A stretch of 64,000 nt of DNA from Oopsacas minuta (Eukaryota; Animalia; Porifera): assembly GCA_024704765.1 (NCBI GenBank), contig JAKMXF010000111.1, positions 1,256,619-1,320,618 of the forward strand, read 5' to 3'. The notes beneath the pieces were generated by a model. It was not told where the DNA came from and ran no database searches. It saw only the letters and a list, made by a program, of their open reading frames with translations. The position numbers and the translations under genes were made by a program. Shown here piece by piece: positions 54,855 through 63,385 of this stretch; the first letter of the stretch is position 1, and the number at the start of each line of letters is the position of its first letter.

Positions 54855-57800
54855 CTAAATTTCTAAGTCCTTGGCTACCATTGTAGCACAAATGTTGTGA
54901 TAAATGTGTTTGTGTTGTTTAAAGAGCTTCAAAGCGATATCTCTACCATTCTCAGCTTTATACAGATTCCTGTACAGAGGTCTAACAAACTTCATACGAC
55001 CTACTTCTGTTAAGAAGCTAGCTACTTGAACATACATCTCTTCCCAATTGGATCTGAGGCATAACCTGAAATTATAATTAGCAAATAAATTCAGATAAAT
55101 GAATACTGATTGATATAGCTTTGATTTTTACAACCTTCAAACAATACTCATAGTACAGTTGAGTGTAACATTGAATATCTGAACCTATAGTTGCCTATAG
55201 ATTGAAATACAGAACAAGGGCAAAATCTATACTGAATATATTAATATTGGAATTATATTGAATGGCTTTCGGAACGAAAATTAATTACTATAATGGGTCT
55301 CGAAGCAGTGCTCCGCGCTCCATCTGCATCCCATCTCATATCCCATACTTAAACAATTCGGAAGCAGTCTGTATTGCTGGACAAGTTCGAACGCTAATTC
55401 TGCGCTAAAGAATAACAAAGGATGTGACTAACTGGTGTTCGGTGAAATTCTTCATGAATTTGTAAGAATATAAAATACGTATTACTTCATAAATGTACTT
55501 CAATGGTTTGTTATAATGGCAGAATAGCGCTAATGATGGACGATTTAACGGAAGCATAACTAATGAATATTTGATAGAAATATCATATGTTTTCTATATG
55601 TAAATTAGCTTACGATAGCCATTTGAATTTTATTTCTGCGTTTTTGGAATCTTCCATATTGTAGAGAGTCTTCATTTTAATCAAGTGAGTTATAGGCAGT
55701 GGAATATCAGCTCTCAGGAGTAGAGATAACAAATCTCGTTTTTGGAGCGGAGAGAGAGACGAGTAGAGTTCAAAACTTGAATCCAGTGTAGCTAGTTCAT
55801 CAGCTGATATATTTATCCACCTATTACTTAGTTCAATACAAGGTTGTTGTAGAGAAGAATCGAAACAAGAGGGAATAATTGAGGGAGCAGGCATACCAGG
55901 AGAGTAGAACCAATTATCCCAATCTAAACTGGAGAAGCAACCTGTTCCTACTTCTTCTGAAAAGAACTCTAAAAAGAATTTTTTGAATAGATCAGTTGTT
56001 ATCAAGCCATCTCCTTTGAACTTATCTATGTAGGCTTTAATGAAGGGATCAAAATTGTCAGGTCCTCCCACCAAGGACTCCAGATGAAAGAGAAAACAAG
56101 AACCTGAGGGAATACAATGGATAATATGTTTAAATTAGCTGAAGGATGAAATTATGTAATCTACTAAAAGAATGATACACAATACACAAGGGATGTATAT
56201 ACTGCTATCTAGAGTGTGTAACTGAGTATTGAAAATATATTGTATTGAAGGGAACAGAATAGAAGGGATGAGGCGAAAAACATTAAGACATAGTGAATAA
56301 TAAATTACAGTAGAACTTAGATAACGACCTACCCCTTCGGGAAAACAAAAATTAATGTGTACAGTCCGAATAGGAATTGTACTATAATTAATAGTAACTT
56401 GGGTATACTCCTTATCAGAGTTCTACTATAGTTTCCAAATCACACTGAAAACATACTATACCTTTCTCATAGGGTACAGATGAGAAGGCATCGTCTGGAT
56501 CTGTGTCTCTAACAGTAGGAACTAGTTTAGTAAACTCATGATCTGATCCAAAGCGTTTGACTGAGTTTAATAGAGAATCATATCCATTGAGAAACTCCAT
56601 ATGTCTCAACTTCTCCGAGTTGAGACGAGAAATAATCTTTCTTTCTAGGAACACAGTGAAGCCTTCATTCAGCCAAAAATGATCCCATGTAGCACATGTG
56701 ACTAAATTACCTGTCCAGCTGTGGGATATCTCATGAATCAGCACTGCAGCTAAAGATCTAAAAACAATAAAGAGTAACAGTAACATCATACCTAGTTTGA
56801 ATGTATCATCGAATTAGCCATTATGGCAATGGCTAAAATATGATAATTATCTTGACTAGGTTAAATACAGGACCGTAATAATTACAGGTGTCACTCTTAG
56901 TCAAATAATGGAAATATAAAAATAATGAAATTTATAAAAGTCAAAACCATGAAAATTTATACATATCCAATTCAAGTTGAATTTTTACAGGAAATTCGTA
57001 ATCTAAAACTTTGGAAATTAAATACTACGGAACTACAAATTTGTAAATATTTGTAAATATTAACTTCATGGCCAATACACGCAATTATTAAGTATAAAGG
57101 AATTAAAACACAATAGAATAATGTACTAATAAATCATGAGAATCCAACTAACCTATCCCCAGCTAACAGAGTAGGAGTAACAAATATGAGACAAGGATGT
57201 TCCATACCTCCGTAAGGGTAACTGGGAGGTAGCACAAGTAAATCGCATGAACCCCAAATGTATGGACCAGCGATTGATTCCCCACACTTAATAAACTCCT
57301 CTATTTCTGAGAATTCATACGCACAAGCATCTAGTAGCTCAGGCTCACTCCAAACTCTAGACCTGAATAATGTATTCATATAATATATTACGTATATTTG
57401 TTAAAGTATTTAATCTACCTCGCTCCAATTTCTCTACAGTGTATATCCCCAATAGCTAATCCTATGAGGTAAGAAGGAATAGGAGTAGGTTGTTCAAACG
57501 AGTATGATACTTTATTCCCCACACCTATAGATTCTCCAGTCAGTCTCCCTTCTTTAATATCTCCTACAGGAATAGCTCCCATCAGAGCAGTCAGTTCAGC
57601 AGGTACTATTAAAGTAGCTCTGTAAGTGAACTTAATGCCAGGAGAGTCCTGACAGGGCAGCAAGGAACGAGCATGAATAGCCTGACACTGAGTAAACACG
57701 AAGGCATGCTTTCCACCTATATGATGACACGATAACCAGATAACCAGATAACCAGATAACCAGTGATAACTCTATAGCAAATGCAAATATCACAGTTAAT

Positions 57801-60800
57801 TATCTTAACGAATAACCAAAATATATTCAAATATTAATTCAAAATATGTACAATGCTACAGAATGCTAACGAAATTTTAAATTTGTTATTTTAGGATTAA
57901 AAAGGAGGGAAAATTGTTTGCCTGAGAGAGCGGAGCAATTAGGCTCAACACTTGTCCGATGCCTCGGGAAGGATATCGGCCAAAAACAGAACAGTTGACA
58001 AATAAGCCATTGGATGCACTTGTGTATTTTATTAGATTGATGAATTGGACCGAAAGGAGGGTTTGATATCTCAAATTAAAAGATGAATTTATAAACTACC
58101 AACGATAACCTACCATAACAACTATTATTCAGTATTGGAAATCAGTGAAATGAATTAACACAGATAAATAAAAGAATTATTTGCATTATGATTGTTTAGA
58201 TATCTAAAATATTAATATCAAATATTATTTTACAATTGTCAAACAAACAAATTATTTAGTCTATTGTCATCTATATTAAGCAAAAATATTCTGCAATGCT
58301 ATATGAGTAATAAATATTCCCTTCTTTGATATCAATTAAATATACTCTATAGCGATAATATATAAACTAATGTGAGTAATAGCAGTAGAAATAGCTATCC
58401 CCCCAATAAGTATTAATCAGTTTGTAGAAGTTATTATAAAATAAGAAACAGTATAAATAGCCTAAAAGCAGGCAGCAAATATAAATATTTATAAGTAGGA
58501 GCTGACTGTAATTCACTCTATCAATTACTAGTCAACTATCAACAACCAACTTCAATATATCAGACTACTGATCTCAAACATTCACAGGCTAAGGTATTAT
58601 GTAGATAAATCATATATCAGAACCCCAGCCCAATATAATTGGGGGTCAAGGTAGGTAGAGTTGGGGATAGGGACCTTACAGTAACAATATTCCAACCTAA
58701 AATCAACTCTAAATGTAGGGAAATTTGTATTTGGCTATACAGAGTCAACTCCCGTTATACCGAACACGGACATATAGAAATGCCTGATTATCTCGAAGTC
58801 TAAAATTATTAAAAATCAAATTAAGGTTATTTCATTCGTCATATCGAATTCTACTTATATAGATTTAATTATCGCGGCTTGAACTTCGATATTATGAGAG
58901 TTGACTATGTAAATACATTCTAGAACAATATCTAAGAAAGAATATGTCTGACTCAGTAGAGAACTTGCTATTCAACGGAAAGAAAGGCTATTTAATGAAA
59001 CTATTTGATCCTAAATTTTCTGAATTTCTGAGATGTGTAGCAATATGTCAAAGATGTGAAAGAATAATGCGAGACCCTTGTAAGATATTACAGGGTGGTC
59101 CTCAAGACACTGTCTGTCTAAACTGTAAAAAGGATGGAGAAGAAGTTACAGAACTGAAGGCTATCCAAAGAGGTATTTTAATTTTGAGAGTGAAGTGTGC
59201 TCTACAGGAGAGAGGCTGCAAATGGACAGGAAAGCTCACGGAGATAAGAGATCATCTAGGAAATTGCGAGGAATTTCTGCTCGAATGTCCTCAGAAATGT
59301 AAAGAAATAAGGAAAAGAAGCGACTTAGAAGTTCACATGAAAAATCACTGTGCAATGAGAATAGTTGAATGCGAGCACTGTACACGAAAATTTCACTTCA
59401 AAGATATGGCAACTCATTTAAATACGTGTGAATACTTTCCGGTAGAATGTATTTGTGGTGAACGACCGAGAAGAAAAGATCTACGAATCCATCAACGAGA
59501 CATCTGCTTAGAAACCGTCATTGAGTGCCACTTTAAAGAATATAAATGTGAAGAAAAGTTTAAGAGAAGATTCTTAGAAGAACATCTAAAGAAAAATGAA
59601 GTCAAACATATTACATTGAAAGTAGTAGCGCTAGAAACGAGAATCCAAATCTTAGAGGGGAAAAATAACAAACTAACTGCTGAAGCGAGACAATTAGCTA
59701 TTAGCAAGATCGATTATGAGGAACAAAACAAGAAACTCAAAACAGAAGTAGATCGATTAGAGGCTCGTAACATAGGGATTGAGAAGATGAATAACAATCT
59801 TAATAAAAAGGTATATATACTAGATGAGCTGAGTCGCTATACATTTGTCCTAGATTGGATAATCGTCGTGAACATTGGTAAGATGCCTGATATCAATGGA
59901 CCTACTTTCATTTTACCGGATTCTGGGATAAAAGTCTACACAAAATACCGAATTCAAGAGTATGCGAATGATATACTATCTCTTTCAATTGCTGTCTGGC
60001 CTATAAGTATGAAAGAAGCATTTTCTTATAACTATTGGAGTTTCATAGTAGATCAACATGATCAATTGTCAACTCTGTGTAACTACAAATGTACAGATAA
60101 CAGAGAAATGATAACGGGAACAGCAAGCAAAGTATTCGAATCTTGTAAAACTATAGCTAAATTCCCTCGAAATGAAATCGATAATCTAAAACTCAAACAG
60201 AATGGAAAGCTGCATGTTAGGATATATGTCAAAAGATAGATAGATAGATAGATGTGTAATTATCTTAACTGTTCCAGTAATCAGCTGAGGGTTTATGAAT
60301 CTTCATATTATATGTAATCTTAAATATTTGGTATGCTTTTACAAATAGTTGTAAACTTGTAATGGATAATAAGCAAAATGTTGTATATAATGATTTGATT
60401 GAACCAGGGTATATGCGCCAAGTTTTGTGTTCTGGTAGGAAATGTCCTCCAGGTTTGAATATATTCTAAAACCTTGCGCATATGAACCAGAGTCACCAAA
60501 GTAAATTGAACACGCTCCTAATAGTCCTCACATGAATTAGGTCAAATCTCTTAATCCTCAGTTATGATCAAAAGTATAATTAAGAGAGCAATTGACTTCA
60601 CTTAAATAATAGAAATACTTGATTGATACGAATTTGTAAAAAATCGTTTTAGTAATCTATTAAATCTCAATTGTTGTCTGTCTGTCTGTCTGTCTGTCTG
60701 TCAGTCTGTCTGTCAGTTTGTTTGTTTGTCAGTTGTGAAGGATAGGATTTACGGTATGCAATTTTGAAATTTTATTTATCGTGTTTATCAAGGAAGTAAA

Positions 60801-63385
60801 TAGAATTCAATAAAACTTCACTAAATATATTGAACATGCTGAATCCGATTTTCACATTTTTGGATTAATCATATGTAAATTTATTGTTGTTTTTATGAAT
60901 ATAAAGTAAACAAATTAGCAAAATCTTAAAGTTTACGTAGATAATTGCCCTCAACGACTACAAAGGGACTTTATCTTACAAAATAATTCAATATCATGTA
61001 TGTCATATATGCATATTTGTGAATTACATTTTCTAAATATATCTCTATTATAATACTCAAGGGAGCCGTCAATTTGGAGAATAATGGATACCTCGAGGCG
61101 GAATGCGGCAAGTTCATCGCGAAGCAACGAGCCAAAGCGATCAGCTTGTGCAACTGCGTGCTGCGTAGTAATAATACTACGCAGCACGCAGTTGTTCAAG
61201 CTGATAAGTAATAATATTCTGAATAGTAATATTATATTCCAATATTAGGTTAACAATACACAGTGTCTCTTTGTGTAGATTCGCAATATAGAATTATTCA
61301 ATATAATTTAATTAGAACAATGAATGAAGTTAATACTGTTGATATAGTTTAATTAATCTTTTCAGTTTCAGGTGAAAGTTTCCCCACTATACGTATACCT
61401 ACTATATAAGTGTAGATGCGGCTGACCCAATAGAGAAATTGATATTTGTTGGAAGAGACAAAGGGTATGTGAAGACATTAATCCCATATACTATCTTACA
61501 GTTTATGACAAGTGCATTAACGTGTCCAAGATGTGGAGGAATAATCCGAGATATGTGTGTGATAAAAGACAGTGATCAACTTATAGTTTGTCTAAACTGT
61601 AAGAAAACAGATGAGTAGTAACCAGGACTACTCAATTCAAAGAAGCAATATCAGGATTGAGAGTAAAGTGTCCGTTACAGAATAGAGGCTGTAGGTACAT
61701 TGGAAAATTGAGTAATTTAGAAAGTCACATGCAGTATCGTCAGTAATTTATATTTGACTGTCCTCAGAATTGTAACCAAATATTGAAGAGGAAGTCTTTA
61801 AAACTCATAAGAAAATTTCGTGTAATATGAGGCTAGTTAGATGCGTTAATTGTGAAGAGAGATTATACTTTAAAGATATGAGAACTCATTTGGAGGTTTG
61901 TAAGTATTTTCCCGTACAATGCGTTTGTCGTCAACGCATTCGAAGAAAAGATCTACAAATTCATAAACAAGACAATTGCTTGTAACTTTAAACAACATGG
62001 ATGTGATGTTATGTTTAAGAGAAGATCCTTAGAGTCTCATATACAGGAAAACTAAGCCAAACACCATATACTTAGAATAAGAACACTTGAGAGTAGAATT
62101 ATTACTTTAGAGAGTCAAAACTATAAACACAAAGATGAGGAAAACAATCAAAAGAAATAAACAAAATTGTTGAAAAACAAAGAGATCATTGAATCAGAGG
62201 ATTTCAGTCAGTACAAGTTAGTTCTGAATTGGAGAATATTAATAGACAATTTCAGAGGTACATTATTGGTGTATGGACTTACATTCACTATTCCTTGTTG
62301 TGGAATAAAATTCTTAACTAAATGCCTCGTAAAAAAAACACACTGATATTAGCAGTTGTTGTCTGGCCTGTCAGAATGAAAGAAGCGTTTTCATACAATT
62401 TCTGGAGTATTGTTATAGATCAAGAAAATGATAAATTATGTGAGAAACAAGAGGGTAATTATAAATGTATTATTAACAAGGAAATAACGCCAGCATCTAC
62501 AAGCAGGCCATTCGAAGCTAGTATGCTCATTGCTAGATATAAACTAGCATGTCTCTATGAATATATTAAAGACGGAGTATTGAATGTTAAGGTATATACT
62601 CAGAAATAATCTTCAGTTTGTATTTTGGCTAACCCTCTCCCCAGGATGTACCTGGTGTGATAGAGTTTCTGGGAGATATACTCCCAAACAACTCTTAAAT
62701 AAATATAAATATTTATACCTAATCTAATGATTCTAAGTTGGTTATGACGTCATAACGTAAGACAAATAAAGCAGGAAATAGTACTGCATGCATCTATAAC
62801 ATTACAATATATAAGTGGAATTTGATTAATGCGAACTCCAAATTGTACATTACACGATTCTCATTGATAGACATTGAAGGAGACTGAACATTTGTAGATG
62901 ATATCAGTATTGTATTAATCTTGTGTTATTGTATTAGTATAACGAGAGCCTACTACACACCCTATATAAGATGGTTACATAAACATACCTTTAGTCTGCT
63001 CAGGAGCTAACCACTGCACAGCAGTAGCATTAGTAACCTTATACTCAATGTTGATCTTTAATTCATCCTTACCAACAATCATATCACTAAATAAAGTTAT
63101 TGATAGAGAAGTTCCAAGGACAGAGGATGCTCCTATCTCCCATTTCAATTTGCGGTTACTAACACAATCGCATACCTCAATTACTTGTATGTTATGAATA
63201 TCAAGTATCAGTAGAGGAGAGGGTACTCCACTAGAACATATGTTAAAGTGTAGCTCAGCTGTAGCAGATATTATCTTAGAACTAAAGTCAAAATCTGCTT
63301 CCCACACAAGATGAGACAATCTGTAATCTTTTGTGTTAGCACAAGACAGAGGATCAGTAGGAAATATAGTTTCTGTTGTAGCCAT
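54855..63385 (-). CDS. LTA4H: Leukotriene A4 hydrolase / M1 aminopeptidase, 6 exons, 633 aa
   Basis: complement(join(54855..55065,55614..56103,56462..56757,57153..57362,57419..57716,62989..63385)) = 1902 nt, GT-AG and in frame. [28 protein letters not shown]...[14 protein letters not shown] and [10 protein letters not shown] motifs. Confidence 0.94.
57731..57762. repeat. (gataacca)x4 minisatellite near the LTA4H intron 1 acceptor
   Basis: Four exact 8-bp units. Confidence 0.85.
58740..58909. mobile_element. pogo/Tc1-like MITE with TA duplication
   Basis: ta|cagagtcaactccc ... gagagttgactatg|ta. Confidence 0.75.
58944..60239 (+). CDS. TRAF-like protein (degenerate RING, TRAF zinc fingers, coiled coil, MATH-like C-terminus), 431 aa, nested antisense in LTA4H intron 1
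   Basis: [33 protein letters not shown]...HMKNHC, CEHC...HLNTC, C.CG...HQRDIC zinc fingers; heptad region; beta-rich C-domain starting FVLDWII. Confidence 0.85.
   Translation: MSDSVENLLFNGKKGYLMKLFDPKFSEFLRCVAICQRCERIMRDPCKILQGGPQDTVCLNCKKDGEEVTELKAIQRGILILRVKCALQERGCKWTGKLTEIRDHLGNCEEFLLECPQKCKEIRKRSDLEVHMKNHCAMRIVECEHCTRKFHFKDMATHLNTCEYFPVECICGERPRRKDLRIHQRDICLETVIECHFKEYKCEEKFKRRFLEEHLKKNEVKHITLKVVALETRIQILEGKNNKLTAEARQLAISKIDYEEQNKKLKTEVDRLEARNIGIEKMNNNLNKKVYILDELSRYTFVLDWIIVVNIGKMPDINGPTFILPDSGIKVYTKYRIQEYANDILSLSIAVWPISMKEAFSYNYWSFIVDQHDQLSTLCNYKCTDNREMITGTASKVFESCKTIAKFPRNEIDNLKLKQNGKLHVRIYVKR
60640..60960 (+). mobile_element. HINE/DINE-like repeat with (ctgt)n microsatellite
   Basis: (gtct)n/(gttt)n tract at 60678..60730 followed by atgctgaatccgattttcac, a motif shared with repeats at ~7440, ~7920, ~24390 and ~41760. 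Boundaries approximate. Confidence 0.45.
61140..61205. other. 31-bp near-perfect hairpin (4-nt loop)
   Basis: atcagcttgtgcaactgcgtgctgcgtagta-ataa-tactacgcagcacgcagttgttcaagctgat; 29 of 31 positions are Watson-Crick. Confidence 0.9.
61416..62609 (+). pseudogene. TRAF-like pseudogene, tandem paralogue of 58944..60239
   Basis: Colinear remnants ([59 protein letters not shown]) with in-frame stops at 61616, 61744 and ~62053, and frameshifts. Confidence 0.88.

Follow-up and report, generated by a model that had tools for sequence, protein, structure and literature searches.

How does a conserved gene in a genome of short introns come to have a first intron of more than 5 kb that holds gene-like sequences on the other strand, and does such a locus tell us where fast-duplicating, immune-type gene families settle? 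Introns of the glass sponge Oopsacas minuta average 341 bp (PMC10280926), and intron 1 of the gene of leukotriene-A4-hydrolase (LTA4H) type considered here lies far above that mean. We analysed a window of 64,000 nucleotides around it (assembly GCA_024704765.1, contig JAKMXF010000111.1, positions 1,256,619 to 1,320,618 of the forward strand); its features are collected in Table 1. Very probably this is an ordinary nested-gene locus, in which an old intron of a single-copy host measures 5.27 kb in O. minuta because it is filled with foreign DNA, namely an antisense TRAF-type gene (the guest), a dead tandem copy of that gene and at least two dispersed repeats.

Table 1. Features of the LTA4H-type gene and of its first intron, in window coordinates
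Feature	Position	Strand	Remarks
LTA4H exon 1	62989..63385	-	ATG at 63385; last base is the first base of a split Gly codon
LTA4H intron 1	57717..62988	-	5272 bp, phase 1, GTATGT...ATATAG
LTA4H exon 2	57419..57716	-	Peptidase_M1_N (PF17900) 3e-13; aligns with LTA4H structures from residue 125
LTA4H exon 3	57153..57362	-	follows a 56-bp intron
LTA4H exon 4	56462..56757	-	HEISH zinc site; Peptidase_M1 (PF01433) 5e-25
LTA4H exon 5	55614..56103	-	Leuk-A4-hydro_C (PF09127) 28 bits, cut-off 27; single copy
LTA4H exon 6	54855..55065	-	contains the stop codon
Intact intronless TRAF-type gene, 431 aa	58944..60239	+	half-RING, TRAF zinc fingers, coiled coil, MATH-like C-terminal domain
Decayed tandem TRAF-type copy (pseudogene)	61418..62609	+	no ATG, frameshifts, stops, deletions
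High-copy dispersed repeat, about 430-480 bp	60658..61137		spacer between the TRAF copies; begins with a (GTCT)n run
Palindrome, near-perfect	61140..61205		31-nt arms, 4-nt loop; adjoins the high-copy repeat; unique in the genome
Short dispersed repeat	58719..58919		65-bp core at 58743-58807; 25-225 bp upstream of the TRAF start codon
8-bp tandem repeat GATAACCA, about 5 copies	57723..57762		on the host strand, ends six bases ahead of the intron-1 acceptor AG

The host gene and its first intron

Judged by its sequence, the host is an LTA4H-type gene of the M1 aminopeptidase/leukotriene-A4-hydrolase family. The features of that family are present, including an M1 N-terminal domain, a catalytic domain bearing HEXXH with a downstream Glu, and an LTA4H-type C-terminal domain, and the best PDB matches of the host exons are LTA4H. 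The gene lies on the minus strand in six exons, giving 633 codons (1902 coding bases) with a single terminal stop and the HEISH motif at residue 310; the six-exon join was checked for frame and length only, and database searches were done exon by exon. Exon 1 aligns in the structure database with residues 2-120 of frog LTA4H (4gaa), as well as with human LTA4H, and the gap between its alignment and that of exon 2 is filled by the few junction residues, which leaves no room for a missing exon. In the O. minuta assembly (61,460,524 bases in 365 contigs), exons 1 and 5 have one match apiece, which makes this the sole LTA4H-type gene in the genome. The housekeeping genes around it are closely packed: PARG begins 280 bp past the LTA4H stop codon, and a PA-RING ligase and an MSL3/MRG-type gene come next.

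Within exons 3 and 4 (56462-57362), the sponge protein reads GGMEH, where the human motif is GGMEN, and has Phe at the position of human Tyr378; the catalytic Tyr of PYEKG is retained. Any epoxide-hydrolase activity of the host on leukotriene A4 is putative.

The five introns, all GT..AG, measure 5272, 56, 395, 358 and 548 bp in order. The first-pass annotation of the window had described a phase-1 junction spanning 5,272 bp beside other introns of 56-548 bp, figures that direct reading matched exactly. The donor GT of intron 1 stands at 62988-62987, after the end of exon 1 at 62989, and the acceptor AG at 57718-57717, before the start of exon 2 at 57716. The exon-1 open frames of four other assemblies, 61-72% identical to that of O. 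minuta, all end 1-4 residues past the same APEQTKG motif, so that the position of intron 1 is old; the end of exon 4 is likewise conserved in relatives. Scans of intron 1 revealed no tRNA, and no Rfam family reached threshold. Its final 379 bp are unique in the genome.

The antisense TRAF-type gene and its decayed copy

The first-pass annotation had also placed an intact TRAF-like gene and a disabled tandem copy antisense within this intron, and both are indeed present on the plus strand, each lying wholly between the canonical LTA4H splice sites. In the protein of the intact gene, zf-TRAF (PF02176) scored 50.7 bits against a cut-off of 27, over two stretches. A profile of this protein and four homologues matched the TRAF6 RING-zinc-finger structure (3hcs) at 6e-9, the top Foldseek match was the TRAF6 N-terminal domain (7e-6), and the zinc ligands are conserved across five homologues. 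The RING region holds only Cys 35, 38, 46, 58 and 61, all invariant, with no His after the third Cys, and is therefore a half-RING; the canonical C3HC4 RING with eight zinc ligands is absent from this protein. TRAF1 is likewise without a RING, so that the missing canonical RING does not exclude membership of the TRAF group. Beyond the zinc fingers, the coiled coil (TRAF-N) is predicted as a single helix over residues 219-296 (pLDDT 80-91), and weak coiled-coil Pfam matches cover the same span.

The C-terminal domain likely has the MATH/TRAF-C fold, as judged from predicted models. Pfam MATH models gave no match to the last 140 residues even at E = 1. The C-terminus of the whole-protein AlphaFold model was too poor, and the domain was folded alone (pLDDT 64, pTM 0.61). 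Against 48,161 structure representatives, MATH-fold proteins took all of the nine top places for this model, led by TRAF1 and TRAF6 at Z 7.6 (126-127 residues aligned; Z below 8 is middling) and followed by SPOP, USP7, Siah1, TRAF3 and meprin. An ESM Atlas model of the domain reached TM 0.59-0.70 to MATH clusters, and Foldseek E-values for the domain were only 0.02-0.3. The sponge protein thus resembles adaptors of the TRAF6/TRAF4 type in having zinc fingers in the register of the TRAF6 structure, a long coiled coil and an eight-strand C-terminal domain that best matches TRAF-C/MATH, but it differs from them in its RING of five Cys without His and in a C-terminal domain undetected by Pfam MATH.

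The second copy, on the same strand about 2.4-2.5 kb downstream of the intact gene, is a pseudogene. Aligned with the intact gene over 1174 coding bases, it shows 61.6% identity (K2P 0.55), and it carries at least nine disabling lesions. GCG stands in the position of the start codon, the frame is shifted four times by deletions of 1, 1, 17 and 10 bp, and about five stops interrupt it, comprising TAG TAA after residue ~66 and three further points, one of them in place of a zinc-ligand Cys. The coiled coil has in addition lost 81 bases through deletions of 21 and 60 bp. The tree, for which the pseudogene was read through and every break marked by an X, gives it a branch of 0.95, roughly double the 0.52 of the intact copy.

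Signs of a retrocopy, such as a poly-A tract and target-site duplications or flanking direct repeats, were not found around the copies. Almost all members of the TRAF-like family in the genome are single open frames, so the absence of introns is uninformative as to retroposition or DNA duplication. Nor were terminal inverted or direct repeats found in intron 1 bracketing the TRAF pair, leaving no sign of transposon-borne capture. The intron does hold dispersed repeats. The one between the two copies has at least 1555 first-look candidates in the genome, with 40 scored copies 83-87% identical, and could account for roughly 1% of the genome; the shorter one upstream of the intact gene has 40 other genome matches, 67-91% identical. 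The palindrome was considered as a miRNA and rejected as a generic hairpin, having only sub-threshold matches to two miRNA models.

Homologues in relatives and the TRAF-like family of O. minuta

The nearest homologues of the nested gene are found in related sponge assemblies, where several paralogues (P0002-P0010) are 43-48% identical to it; in a JGI metagenome scan, the TRAF alignment matched no relative. One of these homologues, P0003, has an internal duplication of the zinc finger and part of the coiled coil, giving 488 aa with three zf-TRAF stretches. The copies of the relatives and the two O. minuta copies form one clade with support of 100/100. The seven sequences of the relatives are monophyletic (100/97), which indicates that each lineage duplicated separately, after the split from O. 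minuta, and the pairing of the two local O. minuta copies is unsupported (56/43).

The homologues lie on contigs of 106,681, 737,117 and 648,217 bases. In the relatives, the contigs that bear LTA4H exons 1 and 4 measure 19,140, 169,734, 654,782, 1,154,556, 1,808,754 and 2,498,683 bases. No contig is common to the two sets, as far as size, a proxy, tells contigs apart, and the sets possibly come from different assemblies. Provided that they come from the same assemblies, we lean slightly towards a nest specific to the O. minuta lineage.

Within O. minuta, the nearest other paralogue is 34-36% identical to the nested gene and matches residues ~13-290 only. The genome contains 104 TRAF-like matches. 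About half belong to pairs or tandem arrays, and contigs C343 and C110 carry dense arrays. Rough clustering gave ~85 loci, 42 of them solitary, although neighbouring genes were merged too eagerly and these counts are rough. Three informative loci adjoin the C-terminus of an aldose epimerase, the C-terminus of an aminotransferase and the N-terminus of Tmp39, and are intergenic as far as the 1.5-kb flanks show. At one locus, L028 (G000:C318:311765-315583), a plus-strand TRAF-like gene (1423-2673) lies between two minus-strand open frames of 357 and 369 aa; each frame extends past the edge of the locus, neither matches Pfam, and the two show no relation to one another. L028 may be a second antisense nest. 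A literature search found no relevant work on TRAF expansion in hexactinellids. The half-RING TRAF family is large and apparently specific to glass sponges.

Two further observations concern this family. Two TRAF-like genes lie 12-15 kb before the window, just past the end of an aminotransferase gene (G000:C111:1241687-1245004); they are 29-34% identical to the nested pair, no closer than family members elsewhere. In addition, one internal TGA and one TAG recur in some twenty matches that cover residues 73-290 of the TRAF-type protein (for example C10:1884-2597, C19:278-997, C66:59991-67424 and C132:587-2988); several of these matches lie at contig ends. They look either like a TRAF-zinc-finger unit that has been dispersed or repeated, or like a subfamily having a single short intron.

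Origin of the nest

Nested genes are often described on the strand opposite to their host. At this locus the TRAF-type gene would be transcribed from its own plus-strand promoter, and minus-strand transcription of the host would run through the guest, with splicing of the pre-mRNA joining 62989 to 57716. As to history, we infer that one TRAF-type gene of the glass-sponge subfamily came to lie in LTA4H intron 1, and that local duplication of a unit of ~2.4-2.5 kb, death of one copy and repeat insertion then followed. The order of insertion before duplication is tentative, since it comes from the tree, which gives no support to grouping the two local copies together (56/43).

These steps correspond to known processes. 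In work on Drosophila, nested genes are reported to arise typically by insertion of short young duplicates into long introns (PMC5174743). The sponge guest is like those duplicates in coming from a large duplicating family, in lying on the opposite strand and in having one copy that is decaying; it differs in that the sponge TRAF family is essentially intronless, so that DNA duplication and retroposition are indistinguishable. The locus thus combines the usual origin of nested genes, in which short duplicates are inserted in introns, with the usual tandem birth and death, and a special landing-site mechanism is unneeded.

Nesting is also widespread in glass sponges. Aphrocallistes vastus has 2432 nested genes (12.4% of its genes). 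The O. minuta annotation has only 83, a low count attributed to the way in which it was made, and both species have a nested glassin gene (PMC10282587). The present locus resembles other hexactinellid nests in that a short single-exon guest is wholly enclosed by one intron of a conserved host with several exons, in a compact genome, and in that the host intron greatly exceeds the genome mean. It differs from them in that the guest is accompanied by a dead tandem copy and in that the nest is apparently absent from the relatives in which the closest homologues occur, again with contigs told apart by size. The literature searched made no mention of an LTA4H/TRAF-type host/guest pair.

The alternatives to an ordinary nested-gene locus concern the reality of the nest, its age and its meaning. 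The nest would be an artefact if exon 1 had been joined to the gene by an assembly error, or if LTA4H used a different first exon nearer 57716. We regard this as extremely unlikely. A search for such a first exon found no minus-strand open frame in the intron that resembles exon 1, and exon 1, which has no second match in the 61-Mb assembly, supplies the N-terminal domain otherwise missing from the gene and joins exon 2 on LTA4H structures with no residue skipped; the splice sites are canonical. If the nest is real, it could also be ancient, the TRAF-type subfamily having resided in LTA4H intron 1 already in the common ancestor of several glass sponges and having duplicated and died there since. 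Conservation of the intron position in four other assemblies and the single 100/100 clade of the nested pair and the relatives' copies are consistent with such an age, as is published work in which conservation extends to many nested genes, and synteny between A. vastus and O. minuta to nearly half of the genes (PMC10282587). We nevertheless think it rather unlikely, because the TRAF copies and LTA4H exons of the relatives lie on different contigs (a distinction made by size, a proxy, in assemblies that are perhaps not the same) and because the monophyly of the relatives' seven copies places their origin after the split from O. minuta.

The remaining alternative is the interpretation that the first-pass annotation put on the locus, that immune-type families in expansion (TRAF-like and SRCR-RTK) use the introns of conserved genes as preferred, systematic landing sites, in which case enrichment of these families in introns is expected. 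The structural part of that interpretation, an LTA4H host with an oversized phase-1 first intron containing an antisense TRAF-like gene and a pseudogene, is borne out here. The systematic landing sites are not, and we consider them quite improbable. The LTA4H intron and the candidate antisense nest L028 are what such sites would produce, but at the published nesting rate of ~12% roughly ten nested TRAF-like members are expected by chance. Furthermore, a large part of the family sits in the dense tandem arrays on C343 and C110, and the three informative loci abut the ends or starts of genes rather than lying between the halves of one gene. In these counts and loci we see no sign of enrichment. 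It is similarly improbable that TRAF-type and perhaps other fast-duplicating signalling families are over-represented among glass-sponge nested genes. If they were, introns of housekeeping genes would be nurseries in which new copies are born, tried and discarded, and the LTA4H locus and L028 would be among the first signs of it.

The ordinary nested-gene reading gives the locus a more modest meaning. A gene-within-gene layout is already known to be common in glass sponges, the LTA4H/TRAF nest is an ordinary case of it, and on its own the locus says nothing new on the genomic placement of immune genes. It matters mostly for annotation, which here needs nesting-aware models that provide for a six-exon LTA4H, a separate antisense TRAF-type gene and a pseudogene. 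To the biology of the large half-RING TRAF family, it adds one dated example of birth and death.
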